Positions 15,296 to 53,610 of a stretch of 64,000 bases of DNA are shown here, one piece after another (position 1 is the stretch's first letter; each line of letters begins with the position of its first letter). The notes below the pieces were generated by a model. That model made no database searches and was not told where the DNA came from. It saw only the letters and a program-made list of their open reading frames with translations. Source of the stretch: Selaginella moellendorffii (Eukaryota > Plantae > Lycopodiophyta); contig NW_003314280.1 in the NCBI RefSeq assembly GCF_000143415.4, positions 620,001 to 684,000 on the forward strand. Direction: 5' to 3'. Position numbers and translations under genes: made by a program.

Positions 15296-16729
15296 GATGC
15301 CTCTCTCTCAATAACACTTCCCAAAGAATCTTCTCACTGTTCTCCTTTAACCCAATCCAGAGCCATAATAGCTCTCTAAACCAGCCACCTGATGCTAACG
15401 CCTCTAGCTAGTGCCTCGCCTCTGAGCTGTGAATAACCAATCCATACCTCTGGACCACACTCACACCTGCCTATGCCTCTGCTCCACAACAAGATCATAA
15501 ACATTTCCTTTTTTGGAAGTCTCATCCTCTAATTGTTACATTGCTCCCTCTCAAGGTGCTCTACCTCAAACTGAGGCCTTGGATAATCTAAACCACTTGA
15601 AGCAAGAGCAAGGATCTCTGGAAGGTAATGCTCTTGTGTGGAGTTATAAGCCACTCTCTAAACTAGCCGTCCACAGGTTCTCTCTTCTAGCCAGCACCTT
15701 TAGACCCTACCTAAGAATCACAATGCCTCTAGCTAGTGCTTATCATCACCTTAATCCAGCACACCTAGAGCTAGTGCCCTCTAGGTGCCTCTCCTAGCAC
15801 TCAGCACCTCCACCCAACACCCAGCTTTGGTGCCATGCTGCCTCATCTCGCCCTGAGCAACTCACCAGCCGCACTCCAATAGTGTCTAGTGCTCGGCCTG
15901 GCTTGTTGCATTGATTGATGGATCAATCACGATGCATAGAGGGAGAATGGAAAGATGGGGCCCCAGGCTCTGAGTAGCCAACCCGAAATTCCAATGCAAG
16001 AGGAGCGATTAGAAAATCGCAGGGCTACAACGCCCATGCATCGCCTCAGCTTGCCAACAGCGTCTACAGCCTCTAGTGCCTTTGCCAGTGTCTAGTGCTC
16101 TACCTAGTGCCTCAGGACACTGTCTAGCACCTCTACTAACACAAGCCTCTACCCTTGAGCTCCACACCACACATAGCACATAACACCACCTATCTCAACA
16201 TTTACCACCTTTGCCCTGACCTGGGCCTTAATGTAGCCATAGCCAAGAACTTCCTTTGCAGCCACAATTCTGTGACTCGCTCTCTTTGCCAACTTCCTTG
16301 CTAATCCACCTTTGACTAGCCACTTTGCTAGTGAGAGCCATCATCCCAGGATCTAAAGTCTGAATAGTGACAATAGATGAGCAAAGGATATTTCTCTGAT
16401 ATATCAAACAACAAAAAAAACAAGAAGAATAGTTGAGCTCCAACTCTTCCTGGGCAGCAGGTTGCAAACGGCCAGCTCCCTCCTCAGGATAAGCCCTAAA
16501 CCCTAGCCCTAGAACGTAAAGATTTTCTTGACTGTGATGTACTGTGATGAAACACAGCCTTTTGGGATCACATAGCCTGGAAGAGAGAGAACACCATGAT
16601 GTAATCTCAAAAAGTAGGAAGATTACATTCTACGTCCTTGAGTGCCTTTGGCATCACTCCTTGAGCCAAGCCGGACGAAAACCTGCGGTCAAACAATGCG
16701 TAGAAACAAAGTTTATCTGTCTAAAGTCT

Positions 16730-46700: not shown

Positions 46701-47700
46701 CATATAAATAAGATGAGAAGACTAAAACATAAAAAGAAAAAGAAGAAAAATAAAAATTAATAAAAAGAAAAAGAAGAAAAATAAAAATTAATAAAAAAAG
46801 AAAAAGATGCTTAATGCCAGAATGGCTTGAGGTGATAATAGTGCATAGAAAAGATTATATCCTACCTGGAAGAGCATTGTTGCAAGTGTGGCAAAAGCAT
46901 GCATAAATCACTTTTACCAGCTTCATCACTATGAAGCCGAAAGAAAAAAGAAATATATGCATTAGCTGGTACTGATGTGAATGACTAAGTCTTAGTGACT
47001 AGAAAAAAATTCTACTTCATGTTGAGACAACAAAAAAATGGTTGCTCTTCAAAATTGCCACCTTATAAAATATTTACTTACAGCAACTCAAAATTCACAT
47101 GAAATATGTCTAATATCTCAATCAATAGACACAAAGTGTGTAGAAAAGTATCTTGAAAGCTGCCATAGAGATATAGTGCAAAAATAATTGATAGAAAATT
47201 TGTTATAAGAGAAGACTTGTTTATGAAACCAAATACTAAGAAACAAAATCCAAAGTTTTTAATTTTCTCTAAAGCCTCCTTGAAGTTAATATGAAACTCT
47301 TTATTCTCCTTTGTAAAAGTGAAAACATGGCTAAATCAACTAACACCTCCAACTACTTCACTTGTAGACTTTAAAGGATCTTTGCTATAACTTCTGACAG
47401 ATTGATCCTGACTAGATTTTGAGAACATGACTTGACATGGGAGTCTGAAAATCTTGTTTAGTTAGATTGCAAAAAAATAACACCATTACAATCTACCATC
47501 TTAGTCTCTAGCAACTATGTAGGTGATAGAATCTCTCAGTCTAGTAGAGGATTCAAATGAACATAAAGCTTTAAAATGAAACTTTTGGAATCATGAAAGT
47601 GAAAAGAGATTAATAATTCTAAATGGTTCTATTGAAAATGAATGGAATAGGATATCCAGCTTGTGTAATAATTTAAACAATCTCAAAGAAGATATCGCAA
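43750..47700. mobile_element. AT-rich, CpG-depleted block of decayed retroelement sequence (possible LINE RT traces at about 45700-46000, - strand)
   Basis: No long ORFs; contains the gypsy RT relic and weak LINE-like DLR../FYKFISR traces; local repeats 44198-44280 vs 44387-44460 and an A-rich tandem at about 46730-46800. Confidence 0.55.
44890..45020 (-). mobile_element. Ty3/gypsy reverse transcriptase relic
   Basis: Reads approximately GFIKPNKSSFGALIFLVKKKKGSIWMCIDY*ALNK, matching the gypsy RT N-terminal motif. Confidence 0.8.
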
Positions 47701-47710
47701 ATAAATCCTA

Positions 47711-48007
47711 TATGAGATCCACACCTTCTTGAGTTTGGCTTCTCACGCTGCAGCTTGCGTCTCTGTCGTCCAAAACAACTGGCTTCTTCCAGAGTTACGT
47801 TGGATTTGTCTTAACTCTTACCAGGTTTTAATTCTCTCGAGACATACTGTGGACCTCAGCTTCTCAAAAGAACCAAAGCAAGCTAAGTGGCGAGAGTATA
47901 CACTCTTGATGGAATCAGTGGCCACAATGCTGGATTTGTCGCCGGCGGCGGAATGCGCAGGGATGGGGAGAAGGATAGAGCATCCGCGCCACACGCGAGC
48001 AACACGA
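47711..48007 (-). pseudogene. Deleted uricase relic with an internal inversion
   Basis: 47711-47725 matches intron 4; about 47726-47877 matches intron 2 to exon 4 in inverted orientation (GCTTGCGTCTCT.TCGTCCAAAACAACTGG, GGACCTCAGCTT); 47888-48007 matches exon 2/exon 1. Confidence 0.88.
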
Positions 48008-48023
48008 TCAAAACCCCTAAAAC

Positions 48024-49319
48024 ATGGGGCATCTCAGTGTGACTGTCTTGGCCCAGCAGCCATCGAAAGTGGCGATGCTGCCCACAAAGTCTGGGTTCGT
48101 GGCCAGGCGATCGCTGTTGATGGGCTCTCTCGCAATGCTCCAAGTGGCGAACCCACGACGCGCATTGGGGAGAAACGCGAGAGACAATCACGATGAGGAC
48201 CTAGAGTTTGAGATGAGAACCATGCAGCTGTTTGAGGTAGCCTATCTTCTTTCTTGATCTTCCTTATGTATTGACAAGGATGTTTCTAGCAATTCCAATG
48301 CGTAGAGCACAACGCGCTCAGTCGTCGCGATCCAAGATTTGGACCTCTCGAGCAATGTCGCAGCAGTGGACATGGACGATGGTGAGATCCAAGGCATTGG
48401 CTCCGGATTTGTGTGGGATCGATTCGGCCACATTGTGACAAATTATCACGTTATCTCGAAGATAGCCAAGGATACGAGCGGCAAGAAACAGATAAAGGTC
48501 TCGTTCTTTTTTCCTTCTTTTGTGGCTACAAAGTCGTGTATGATCGATCACAGGTGGTATTGCTGGGTTTGAATGGAGACGTCGATTCTTACAATGCAGC
48601 TATCATCGGTCTCGATGCTTCTCGTGATCTCGCAGTTCTCAAGGTACAGGAAAATCTTTTCCGCTGGTTGTTTACATTCTTCTTTTCTTTGGTGTTTAAG
48701 ATTGAAGTTCCAGAATCCAGTGTATTGCGTCCAGCAGTGATAGGAAGCTCCAAAGATCTTAGAGTCGGCCAAAATTGCTACGCGATAGGAAATCCTTACG
48801 GATACGAGCACATCCTCACTACTGGAGTACGTAAAAACTTCTCTTTTCTTGCTTCACGTAGCTTTGTTCTTCGCAGGTAGTCAGTGGATTGTGCAGACAA
48901 ATTCCTTCACCCTCTGGCAAACCGATCTTCGGTGCCATACAAACTGATGCATCGATAAATGCGGGTATAATACATCGAGTGATTAGCTTTGGAAGAACTG
49001 GAACTAAAAAGACGATCTTGCAGGGAACTCTGGAGGACCATTGCTCGATTCATTCGGACGAGTCATCGGTATCAACACCGCAACCTTCACCCGGCGAGGT
49101 AGGCATACTTTTCTTTCTCATTCTCACACGATGATAAACATTGAAAAAACATTCTCTCAAATTCCAGGCTCGGGAACGTCCTCCGGTGTGAATTTCGCAG
49201 TGGCGATCGATCTGGTGAGGCAAGTCGTGCCCCATTTGATCGTGGAAGGCGCGGTGAGCTCTAGCAGATCAGTGGAGAGAGGTGTTCTTGGGCCTCCCAG
49301 ATACCTCTCGCTTCCATGA
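48024..49319 (+). CDS. DEG5: Thylakoid-lumen Deg protease without PDZ domain, multi-exon
   Basis: Twin-Arg signal ARRSLL; [35 protein letters not shown]|NSGGPL, GVNFAV; no PDZ domain. Confidence 0.9.
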
Positions 49320-49344
49320 AAAAATTCCAAGTCCTATAGACGCA

Positions 49345-49369
49345 AAACCCTAAGAACTAGGGTTTAGGG
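49345..49369. promoter_or_regulatory. Inverted pair of telo-boxes upstream of the L12-like ORF
   Basis: AAACCCTA-agaac-TAGGGTTT followed by AGGG, about 20 nt before ATG 49385. Telo-boxes are typical of plant translation-machinery genes. Confidence 0.6.
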
Positions 49370-49384
49370 CTTTTGGGGTTCTCG

Positions 49385-50374
49385 ATGATGAGGCGCGCGT
49401 GGAGGAATCGCTGCCCCGCCCGGCGCTGCTACGAGAATGGAGGTATTCCTTCCAGGTCCTTGCACGGCGCGGCGAGGCGCGGCCCCTACGATGATGGCGG
49501 CGGCGTCGACGCGGCCCCGGCGCCATCGGCTAAGGTGCTCAAGATCGTCGAGGACATCGCCAATCTCACACTGCTCGAGGCGGCCGACATGTCGCTGCTG
49601 CTCAAGAAGAGGCTGCGCATCCAAAACGTGCCCGTCATGTCCATGGGGATGAATGTGATGCACGATATGTGGTATGATCCTTTGCCGCTCCCCGCCGCCG
49701 GTCCTCCGCCGCCTCCTCTTCCGCGGCGTTCCCTCGGCGGCAGCCAGAGGATTCTTCCGGAAGAGATCCATCTCCAGCACGGGCTCTTGCGCAGTCCAAG
49801 TGGTGCCGCCGCCACCGCCGCGAGCTCCTCCTCCTCCCGGTCGGTCCATGCGGCGATCAGCGAGAGTGACAAGTATCTCTATCAGCTCCCCTCGGCGTCG
49901 TCGGACACGGACTCCTACGACAACGAGCTGGACGATCGCGACCACGATCGCGACGTCGATCGCGACGACGACGACAAGTTCGGCACCGGCGTGGAAGAAG
50001 AGGATCGTTGGGACGATGACGAGGTGACAATGCCTGGAGCGAAGAGTCTGAGCAAGGCGCAAGGTGATGGAGCACAGACTGTTGCTGCAGCAAAGAAGGC
50101 CGCGACGCCGACGAAGAAGAAGGCTCCAGCGGCGAAAGCCACAGCGAGCAATGGAGCTCCCGATGGATCGCCCGCTCCCGCGGCCGTCATCAAGAAGAGA
50201 GGTGGCCGGAGACCGAAGGCCAACGAGGGAGCTGTGCCGTCTTTCACAGCGCCAGCGCCGGACCCCCCGCCGCCTGCGAAGAAACCAGCGGTGGCGACGA
50301 AAGCAAAGGCGAGAGCTTCGACCACTACAACCAAAGCCAAACCAGCTGCTGCCGCTGCAAAGGCTGCTGCGTGA
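49385..50374 (+). CDS. Ribosomal L7/L12 N-terminal-domain protein with an acidic tract and Lys/Ala/Pro-rich tail, 329 aa, intronless
   Basis: Arg-rich presequence; PSAKVLKIVEDIANLTLLEAADMSLLLKKRL..PVM; no L12 C-terminal domain; D/E tract; AKKAATPTKKKAPAAK-type tail. Confidence 0.75.
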   Translation: MMRRAWRNRCPARRCYENGGIPSRSLHGAARRGPYDDGGGVDAAPAPSAKVLKIVEDIANLTLLEAADMSLLLKKRLRIQNVPVMSMGMNVMHDMWYDPLPLPAAGPPPPPLPRRSLGGSQRILPEEIHLQHGLLRSPSGAAATAASSSSSRSVHAAISESDKYLYQLPSASSDTDSYDNELDDRDHDRDVDRDDDDKFGTGVEEEDRWDDDEVTMPGAKSLSKAQGDGAQTVAAAKKAATPTKKKAPAAKATASNGAPDGSPAPAAVIKKRGGRRPKANEGAVPSFTAPAPDPPPPAKKPAVATKAKARASTTTTKAKPAAAAAKAAA

Positions 50375-51652
50375 GATCGATCGATCGATCGATCGAGCAG
50401 GACGAAGGGAATCACAAGAGCTGATGAAACAACAAACTCTCAAAGGAACTTCCGACACACAGGTTCCAAAATCGTATCGTCGTTTATCTTCGTTTTTTTC
50501 GCTTTGCTTTGGTCCACTTTCAGGGAATGAAGAGGCACAAAGTCTCTTCACCTTTTTGCTTTCTTGGAAGCTCCTCTAAAGTTTGACAACAGGGATTCTT
50601 CCTTCAAGCTTGCCAAAAGAAGAGTACTTTTGCAAAAGATAACTCTCGTGCAAGTTTATAATCTAGTGTCAACTTTTGGCAATTGCCCTTTCCCGGCATG
50701 TGGCGCTACAAGAGAATTCCGCTCCATTCCAACTCACGCCTGTAAGGCCACAGCCTTATAAAACTATTCCCGATGATGAAAAGGAGGAGAAAAGAATGGA
50801 CCAAAATTCAAAGATAATCGCTTTGGTTCTCCATGATCATCGCAACATGCCTGACCAAAATTATACCTTGCGTGGAGTGTGGCGCATTCCATCCCACCAA
50901 TGTAATCAATCATGGGATACCACGAGATTTCTAAATGCTATAGTTTCACTATCAATCTAAACATCACATGGTTTGCTTGCTTCACGCTACATCCCAGCCG
51001 TCGATTCCAGAAGCCCACCAAACGCTTTTAACACCTTGTCGTCGTTACCCTTTTTGTACGCACTCATTAACATGGACGTTAGGCGCATATGCCGCGATAT
51101 ATTCTCCGCCGCAAGATCCCATTGACGGCGCTGGGCATATTCCGTGTGTGTGGTTTAGTGCTCGTGAGAGGGGGAGGACCACGCGCGCCCTGCCCGCGAG
51201 CACCCGCCGGGACCGAGACGATGATGAGCGCTGCGCTGCCAGGTATGATCTCTGCTCAATCTGGCGCTGGCTCCAGCTCCACTAGCCGCGCTGGAGCGAT
51301 TTCCAGCAATGCCTAGGTCTCCCAGCGTCGATTCTTGCTGCTCTTGGGATATTTCATCGCCGGCCAATGCGCCGGAGCTGCGCAAATTGCCCCGGAGCTC
51401 GGGATTTTTCTCTGTTGTCTGGCTGGACCTTTGGGAGGCTTGTGTGGAATCGTGTGAGCATTGCAATGCCTTTCGTGTGAACGAGAGATTTCTTGCAAGC
51501 CAGTTCTAGGTAGTTTTTCCATCGTTTTTCATCCTCTGCTGGATCTTGACCTTCGTTATTTTTTTGTCATTGCATAGAGAGAAGAACTGGCAACTGGCAC
51601 AAAGTGGTGATCCCAATGCGCTGCGCTTAACACGAGGAGGACGAAGAATAAG

Positions 51653-53610
51653 ATGGAGAGAAATCGCTGCGCACTTCTAATCGTCCTGGCAGTTCTGGCA
51701 ATGCCCGGTGGTGGTAACGCGGACGATAAAGACGCGCTCATGGCATTCAAGGCTTCGGCAGATGTGTCGAACAGGCTAACGAGCTGGGGGAACGGAGATC
51801 CTTGCAGCGGCAATTGGACTGGTGTAAAGTGCGTGCAAGGACGGATTCGCTATCTCATCCTCGAAGGCTTGGAGCTGGCCGGATCAATGCAAGCGCTCAC
51901 CGCACTCCAGGACCTCCGCATTGTCAGCCTCAAGGGGAACTCTCTCAACGGCACTCTTCCGGATCTCACGAACTGGAGATACTTGTGGAGCTTGTATCTT
52001 CACCACAACGACTTTAGCGGCGAGCTTCCACCCAGCCTGTCCAACCTCGTACATCTTTGGCGGCTCAATCTCTCCTTCAACGACTTCTCGGGACAGATAC
52101 CACCATGGATCAACTCGTCGCGGCGGTTGCTCACTTTGAGGCTCGAGAACAACCAGTTCTCGGGGGCTATTCCGGATCTCCGGCTCGTCAACCTCACGGA
52201 GTTTAACGTTGCCAACAACAGGCTGAGTGGAGAGATCCCACCGTCGCTCAGGAACTTCTCAGGCACTGCGTTTCTGGGGAATCCATTCTTATGTGGTGGC
52301 CCTCTGGCGGCATGCACGGTGATACCCGCGACACCGGCACCTTCTCCGGCAGTGGAGAATATAATCCCGGCCACACCGACGTCCAGACCAAACGAGGGAA
52401 GAAGAACGAGGAGCCGACTTGGGACAGGGGCCATCATCGCCATTGTCGTTGGTGATGCGGCGGTTCTCGCCTTGATCGCTCTGGTTTTCCTGTTTTTCTA
52501 CTGGAAACGCTACCAACGCATGGCGGTGCCTTCTCCAAAGACCATCGACGAGAAAACGGATTTTCCAGCGTCACAATACTCGGCTCAGGTGCCGGAAGCG
52601 GAGAGAAGCAAGCTGGTATTTGTCGACTCCAAAGCCGTGGGCTTCGACCTGGAAGATCTCCTGCGAGCTTCTGCCGAGATGCTGGGAAAAGGAAGCTTTG
52701 GAACGGCATACAAGGCTGTGCTCGAGGACGGAACAATAGTTGCGGTGAAGCGGCTCAAGGACATTACAATATCTGGAAGGAAAGAGTTTGAGCAACATAT
52801 GGAGTTGATCGCAAAGTTTCGACACCCCAACGTGGTTAAGCTCATCGCATACTATTACGCCAAGGAAGAAAAGCTCCTGGTGTACGACTTCATGCCCAAC
52901 GGGAACCTCTACACACTTCTTCACGGTAAGTTTGTCGCTGTTTACAAATTCCTAGCTCATCGACTGCTCTTGCAGGTAACAGAGGTCCCGGAAGGAAACC
53001 CCTGGACTGGACAACGCGCGTTAAGATCGCTCTGGGTGCGGCTAAGGGCCTGGCCTTCATACACCGTCAGCCTGGCGCTCAAAAAATACCGCACGGAAAC
53101 ATCAAGTCTTCGAACGTGCTGCTCGACAAAGATGGCAACGCTTGCATTGCAGACTTCGGCCTAGCGCTGCTCATGAACACGGCAGCGGCTTCTCGTCTAG
53201 TAGGCTACAGAGCTCCCGAGCACGCAGAGTCAAAGAAGATATCTTTCAAGGGGGACGTCTACAGCTTCGGGGTCTTGCTCTTGGAGCTCCTAACTGGGAA
53301 GGCACCGGCACAGTCACATACTACGCAGGGGGAGAACATCGATCTTCCACGCTGGGTACAGTCCGTGGTTCGGGAGGAGTGGACTGCCGAAGTCTTCGAC
53401 ATCGAGCTCATGAAATACAAGAACATCGAAGAGGAGATGGTGGCCATGCTACAGGTTGGGATGGTTTGCGTCTCGCAGTCGCCGGACGATCGGCCAAAGA
53501 TGAGCCAGGTTGTGAAGATGATCGAGGATATAAGAGCCGATCAATCTCCAGTGGCCGGGGACTCGACTTCGCAGTCACGCTCTGGATCTCCCTCGGACGC
53601 AAGCCATTGA
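51653..53610 (+). CDS. LRR-III receptor-like kinase (PXC1-like, atypical HGN catalytic loop), 2 exons
   Basis: Signal peptide, 5 LRRs, [19 protein letters not shown], intron about 52926-52975, [27 protein letters not shown]. Confidence 0.95.

Follow-up and report, generated by a model that had tools for sequence, protein, structure and literature searches.

Mitochondrial bL12 proteins (bL12m), such as human MRPL12, yeast Mnp1 and the L7/L12 of Marchantia polymorpha, carry a presequence, an N-terminal domain of two helices and the Met/Gly-rich start of a hinge, and canonical members go on to a factor-binding C-terminal domain (Pfam Ribosomal_L12, PF00542). To our knowledge every bL12 N-terminal domain dimerises and binds the C-terminal helix of uL10, as a property of the family, and the number and identity of the bL12 copies on the stalk set the efficiency with which translational GTPases are recruited. 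L7/L12 engineered to be single-headed or reduced to the N-terminal domain are classical tools; we know of no natural headless bL12 paralog, none was found in the literature searched, and a full-text literature search on the Pfam domain, by its name or by its accession, returned no paper. The available portion of one pan-eukaryotic survey describes bL12m duplications in myzozoans, diatoms, spermatophytes and kinetoplastids and proposes hetero-oligomeric stalks (bioRxiv 10.64898/2026.10.06.756942); in that portion lycophytes are not among the duplicated lineages, and no headless paralog is described. Passages of two papers report that a free pool of human MRPL12 binds and stimulates POLRMT (PMC3787750; PMC2896726, citing Wang et al. 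2007); no such interaction appeared with the homologue from yeast (PMC2896726). Off the ribosome, human MRPL12 therefore offers a precedent at the interface of transcription and translation, although the human protein is full-length, unlike the one described here. As background rather than evidence, gene expression in the mitochondria of Selaginella is unusually elaborate: the transcripts have 2,139 mRNA editing sites, and the genome has 37 introns but lacks tRNA genes (PMC5654404).

Within the 64-kb stretch of spikemoss DNA that we analysed (the window), one ORF shares with bL12m a presequence-like N-terminus, the two-helix N-terminal domain and the Met/Gly-rich hinge start, with 40-60% identity over about 45-90 residues. 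The homology ends within the hinge, near residue 95, and in place of PF00542 some 235 residues follow as an acidic and basic tail that is predicted to be disordered. Most probably the ORF is a genuine nuclear gene of spikemoss, derived from bL12m and restricted to its lineage.

Layout of the ORF and its N-terminal domain

The ORF runs uninterrupted for 329 codons on the forward strand (window 49385-50374; ATG at 49385, stop codon at 50372-50374). An earlier note on this DNA had described an intact, intronless ORF of 329 residues with an Arg-rich start, a Pro/Ser linker, a D/E tract and a K/A/P tail; the coordinates were as it gave them, transcript contigs crossed the ORF colinearly without a joint, and composition counts bore out the layout, which is as follows.

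Residues 1-35 (49385-49489, + strand): Arg-rich, presequence-like N-terminus with 9 Arg and 1 Glu, net charge +8
Residues 36-48: short acidic and Gly stretch, net charge -3
Residues 49-95 (49529-49669, + strand): bL12 N-terminal domain and start of the Met/Gly-rich hinge
Residues 49-77, within the preceding: two amphipathic helices, net charge +1
Residues 78-95, within the same: Met/Gly-rich stretch, net charge 0
Residues 96-175 (49670-49909, + strand): Pro/Ser/Ala-rich linker, net charge 0, predicted disordered
Residues 176-217 (49910-50035, + strand): acidic block with 16 Asp and 5 Glu, net charge -16
Residues 218-329 (50036-50371, + strand): K/A/P/T-rich basic tail with 18 Lys and 4 Arg, net charge +18, predicted disordered

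A mature protein beginning near residue 36 would be about neutral overall, with its charge strongly segregated, and an exact look-up found the exact protein sequence absent from public assemblies. The frame did not stay open when the ORF was shuffled by mononucleotide (0 of 5000 shuffles open in the same frame). At 64% GC (71% at third codon positions), against 47% for the window, the region is GC-rich, and because of this composition several frames are open, including one of 395 residues on the opposite strand (window 49364-50551, -). Since such openness is weak evidence alone, the choice of frame needed independent evidence, which is given below from transcripts and polymorphism.

Residues 53-87 matched Pfam Ribosomal_L12_N (PF16320) at 26.0 bits (E-value 7.6e-6), a margin of 1 bit over the curated cut-off of 25, and the motif that had earlier been read as that of an organellar bL12 N-terminal domain falls within this match. 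A phmmer search of all PDB chains returned solely mitochondrial bL12 (pig and human, E-values 9e-7 to 2e-5, residues 30-89), with no plastid or bacterial L12 chain among the matches. An exhaustive HMMER search with residues 1-232 against 1.84 billion representatives identified 12 matches at E ≤0.001 (40.7 bits at most), all of them running through residues 36-95; the full-length ones were canonical bL12m with a normal C-terminal domain, among them those of Psilotum nudum, Marchantia and an arachnid, and the shorter ones were truncated sequences or fragments. By tblastn the Psilotum bL12m precursor aligned over 121 residues at 36% identity (window 49394-49717), an alignment that begins in the presequence region and extends as far as the start of the hinge. 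Since this homology reaches the presequence region, from about residue 4, the N-terminal part appears to have been inherited from a mitochondrial precursor, and the same homology together with the composition suggests a targeting role for the N-terminus.

AlphaFold2 predicted a helix-turn-helix of residues 49-59 and 63-76 (pLDDT 84-94), and outside residues 49-76 a single short, low-confidence helix (residues 155-158). In a 13-sequence alignment the spikemoss protein kept all invariant N-domain columns, as it does by construction of the alignment; its Met/Gly-rich hinge start (residues 84-93) aligned with plant and animal hinges, and no alignable sequence lay beyond. A homodimer prediction for residues 40-100 scored 0.19 against a mark of 0.32, which says nothing either way about binding. 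In a protein atlas the whole protein pointed weakly (0.78) to a cluster of L12_N, and word-index protein searches with the full length, residues 40-100 and the first 130 residues returned no matches; in such searches low-complexity words swamp the full-length query, and the N-terminal domain shares too few exact words. Judged by these sequence comparisons, residues 49-95 contain a genuine mitochondrial-type bL12 N-terminal domain, and with bL12m as its closest relatives and a presequence-like N-terminus the protein falls into the mitochondrial subtype, not the plastid or bacterial one.

The C-terminal domain, which the earlier note had also found missing, was absent from every search: PF00542 had no match at E ≤10 in the ORF, in its C-terminal 239 residues or in the ORFs of alternative frames, and permissive tblastn with six canonical bL12m proteins found no bL12 C-terminal domain anywhere in the 64-kb window, the matches being confined to 49394-49717. 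On these two results we rejected a C-terminal domain hidden in another frame or elsewhere in the window. MAFFT placed residues 153-175 under a helix of the canonical C-terminal domain, a placement that no search supported and that we regard as an artefact of the alignment. Because the protein matches the N-terminal family above cut-off and the C-terminal family not at all, we file it as a bL12m-derived paralog rather than as a bL12, with what appears from its sequence to be a new architecture.

Transcript and coding constraint

Four runs, each from a different study, supplied the Logan contigs that were placed on window 47600-52600. The contigs of all four runs splice out the 50-70-nt GT..AG introns of the upstream gene and are therefore RNA-derived. 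Colinear contigs covered 49374-50839 (run X1), 49307-50724 (X11), 49358-50570 (X9) and 49532-50621 (X3), crossing the junction of N-terminal domain and tail, at which the earlier note had proposed a look at RNA, unspliced in all four studies and continuing past the stop codon into 250-550 nt of 3' UTR. There were no contig joints between 49166 and 51240 in the four runs, and depth was zero at 50940-51106 in all of them. From the colinear cover, the lack of joints and the zero depth downstream it follows that the gene is a single exon, separate from both neighbours.

49307-50921 (+ strand): transcribed unit, single exon of about 1.5-1.6 kb, apart from both neighbours

The contigs carry no strand, and the + orientation of the transcript was inferred from the coding evidence below. 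Depth relative to the upstream gene was about 0.4 in the lowest run and 5.6 in the highest; crude as contig depth is, this spread suggests an independent transcript and hints at its own regulation.

These contigs also bear on the explanation that the gene model is incomplete, with a C-terminal domain supplied by a distant exon or by trans-splicing, or with this ORF as the organism's only bL12m. An environmental eukaryotic contig (L001:286-1028) lends this some colour, as its bL12m was called as two adjacent ORFs, the N-terminal domain (P0003, one of the truncated HMMER matches) and directly behind it the C-terminal domain; these split calls imply that an intron or a frameshift interrupts the gene immediately past the hinge, where the spikemoss homology also ends. 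However, the four studies showed no joints between 49166 and 51240, the contigs pass the stop codon into UTR before depth falls to zero, no frame of the 64-kb window encodes a C-terminal domain, and the Marchantia bL12m gene is intronless. The earlier note had named a missing Ribosomal_L12_N match, splicing to a C-terminal domain and a split into two genes as outcomes that would speak against its reading, and none of these was seen. We regard this explanation as largely refuted and give it hardly any chance.

The variants available for a look at constraint are differences between the contigs and the window, and represent alleles or accessions that share about 98.5% identity with the window rather than orthologs; contigs filed under a second organism label were likewise about 98.5% identical to it. 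Among the variants listed, the ORF has 15 single-base differences, 9 synonymous and 6 non-synonymous, the latter mostly conservative (V/A four times, I/V once, G/R once). Over 245 synonymous and 742 non-synonymous sites this corresponds, among the variants listed and with small counts, to a pN/pS of about 0.22, and the synonymous excess over the neutral expectation is significant at P 0.004-0.012, the exact value varying with the transition bias that is assumed. Read in the frame of the antisense ORF, the variants listed comprise 3 synonymous and 12 non-synonymous changes, a pattern that rejects the antisense coding frame; the 395-aa ORF is a side effect of GC-rich coding sequence on the sense strand, and one that could mislead automated gene callers. 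The only listed change within the Pfam match (residues 53-87) is synonymous, and the listed changes in the tail are 4 synonymous and 4 non-synonymous, so that the tail is perhaps more relaxed than the N-terminal domain. Indels follow the frame as well: among the variants listed, the 990 nt of the ORF contain one, of 12 nt, and about 465 nt of 3' UTR contain five, of 4, 1, 1, 1 and 7 nt. Such a pattern of polymorphism is consistent with a frame that is translated and subject to purifying selection, and we are fairly confident that the gene is real and protein-coding.

Tail, origin and possible function

Beyond the hinge, the searches returned no relatives. The linker (residues 96-175) matched no Pfam family, residues 95-329 had no usable match in the protein atlas, and the HMMER search with residues 1-232 of 1.84 billion representatives found neither a relative of the tail among its 12 matches nor any protein that joins the N-terminal domain to an acidic and basic tail. 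This sequence is of low complexity and consists in part of short tandem repeats: a 12-nt tandem repeat (GACGATCGCGAC, 3.4 copies) lies inside the acidic block at window 49931-49971, a (GATC)5.5 repeat follows directly after the stop codon, and the 12-nt in-frame length polymorphism sits at 50325, in a Thr-rich run of the basic tail. Ala makes up 33% of residues 218-329, Lys 15% and Pro 14%.

These features would suit a young, truncated bL12m duplicate that is transcribed yet functionally neutral, either a chimera in decay or a "proto-gene" one, with a tail that results from reading through into simple repeats rich in GC. Consistent with such a chimera, no relatives share the tail in the search of 1.84 billion proteins (query residues 1-232) or in the atlas, the tail has microsatellite-like repeats (the 12-mer in 3.4 copies), a (GATC)5.5 run after the stop codon and a length polymorphism, and high GC keeps several frames open, the 395-aa antisense ORF included. 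A neutral sequence would, however, be hard to reconcile with a pN/pS of 0.22 (P ≤ about 0.01) among the variants listed, or with a single in-frame indel in the ORF against five out-of-frame ones in about 465 nt of UTR, again among the variants listed; the transcript is moreover present in four studies at a depth comparable to or above that of the neighbouring gene, and the invariant alignment positions of the N-terminal domain are all intact. We consider a neutral chimera unlikely.

The tail had been called histone-H1-like, and this likeness stood in composition only. The C-terminal tails of H1, the N-terminal extensions of Drosophila RpL22 and RpL23a, and mycobacterial HupB all place Ala/Lys/Pro-rich, basic, disordered segments on a folded module, and basic disordered Ala/Lys/Pro tails generally bind nucleic acid electrostatically. 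The resemblance of the spikemoss tail to these extensions is compositional, the adjacent block of net charge -16 could neutralise it, and H1 tails have a Lys content much higher than its 15%. The protein had no Pfam match to the globular domain of linker histones (Linker_histone) and none to AT_hook; the core of an AT-hook is Arg-Gly-Arg-Pro flanked by basic residues, and the nearest string, KKRGGRRPK (residues 270-278), is without the G-R-P tripeptide.

In many nuclear chromatin proteins a basic K/A/P block comes after an acidic one, and this shared layout raises the explanation that the gene encodes a functional nuclear or nucleolar protein associated with chromatin or RNA, in which the Arg-rich and K/A/P parts act as signals and the bL12 helices merely dimerise. 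The sole other family hint in the protein, a sub-threshold match to the YL1 nuclear protein (E-values 0.05-0.18), points the same way but is far below cut-off and driven by low complexity. Against a nuclear role, homology of the N-terminal part to a mitochondrial bL12m precursor sets in near residue 4, and the composition of its first 35 residues (9 Arg and 1 acidic residue) fits a presequence. We judge this explanation to be quite improbable.

Returning to a bL12m-derived gene with a mitochondrial product, the homology suggests that it arose as a duplicate, or a remodelled copy, of a plant bL12m gene, and the tail has the look of coding sequence that arose de novo from simple, GC-rich sequence once the C-terminal domain had been lost. 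The missing introns were rejected as an argument for a retrogene origin: the bL12m gene of Marchantia paleacea is also intronless, so the intronless state is probably ancestral and uninformative on retroposition. The earlier note had proposed a repurposed bL12 paralog that could act as a stalk decoy or tether mitoribosomes to nucleoids or RNA; derivation from bL12m, absence of the C-terminal domain and transcription as one unspliced exon all stood (Pfam, PDB, tblastn and contigs), and the repurposing, as decoy or as tether, is the more conjectural part.

For such a role we propose the following, as a tentative mechanism. The protein would be imported into mitochondria, where its N-terminal domain would dimerise, with a second copy or with canonical bL12m, and attach to the C-terminal helix of uL10m. 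The stalk, or the free bL12m pool, would thereby gain a subunit that lacks the factor-binding head but has a long polyampholyte tail; through its basic K/A/P block this tail might bind rRNA, mRNA or mtDNA by electrostatic attraction, and the acidic block next to the basic one might mask it. We put the probability that the locus is a real, transcribed bL12m-derived gene and that this mitochondrial headless-subunit explanation also holds, taken jointly, at roughly 0.4. The most specific form, a dedicated headless stalk subunit whose switchable tail couples mitoribosomes to RNA or the nucleoid, or which tunes the number of factor-binding heads, is doubtful.

If docking on the mitoribosome is true, the gene would be a natural experiment in stalk heterogeneity and might provide a physical link of translation to RNA or DNA in plant mitochondria; should the headless-subunit reading hold, it would be the first natural bL12 without a C-terminal domain to have a regulatory role. 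If there is no docking, it is still a clear case of a new expressed gene in which a conserved docking module is joined to low-complexity sequence that apparently arose de novo, and the protein collections searched do not contain it.

Neighbouring genes and flanking sequence

The gene lies between two others on the same strand, with a pair of telo-boxes shortly before its ATG.

47938-49319 (+ strand): upstream gene, trypsin-like (Deg/HtrA-type) serine protease, identified from separate ORF pieces
49345-49352 (+ strand) and 49358-49365 (- strand): telo-box pair AAACCCTA, inverted, 20-40 nt before the ATG
51153-53164 and beyond (+ strand): downstream gene, LRR receptor-like kinase (LRRNT_2, LRR and kinase Pfam matches)

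Telo-boxes are typical of plant genes for ribosomal proteins and translation factors. The pair that had been noticed upstream was located as an inverted one at 49345-49365, and with contig 5' ends at 49307, 49358 and 49374 it coincides with the 5' end of the transcript or lies slightly within it. The window holds 7 telo-boxes against 1.58 expected, a number that none of 100 shuffles reached; the five others (AAACCCTA at 16498, 21430, 40991, 46584 and 56243) may mark the 5' ends of further genes. A site II motif (TGGGCC) at 49289 was set aside, the motif having chance frequency in the window, as was capture by a transposon, there being no terminal inverted or direct repeats flanking the gene.

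The protease gene has at least 6 GT..AG introns of 50-70 nt, all confirmed by RNA contigs, and the intron from 48234 uses alternative acceptors at 48288 and 48304. Introns this short and genes this closely packed suit Selaginella moellendorffii. Its protein seems to end without a PDZ domain, in which it presumably resembles DEG5-type proteases. As its stop codon (49317-49319) is about 65 nt before the ATG of the bL12m-derived ORF, the transcript ends of the two genes nearly abut or overlap. Near the 5' part of the protease gene, at 47748-47904 and 47948-48049, the contigs have a joint of opposite strands and two non-canonical skips of 35 and 41 nt (CG..AT and TC..CT), odd joints that may be assembly artefacts or reflect a divergent haplotype. 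On the downstream side, splicing of the 5' leader of the LRR kinase gene uses either of two donors, 51240 or 51506, each of which is joined to a point near 51575-51576, and this gene is strongly expressed in all four runs.
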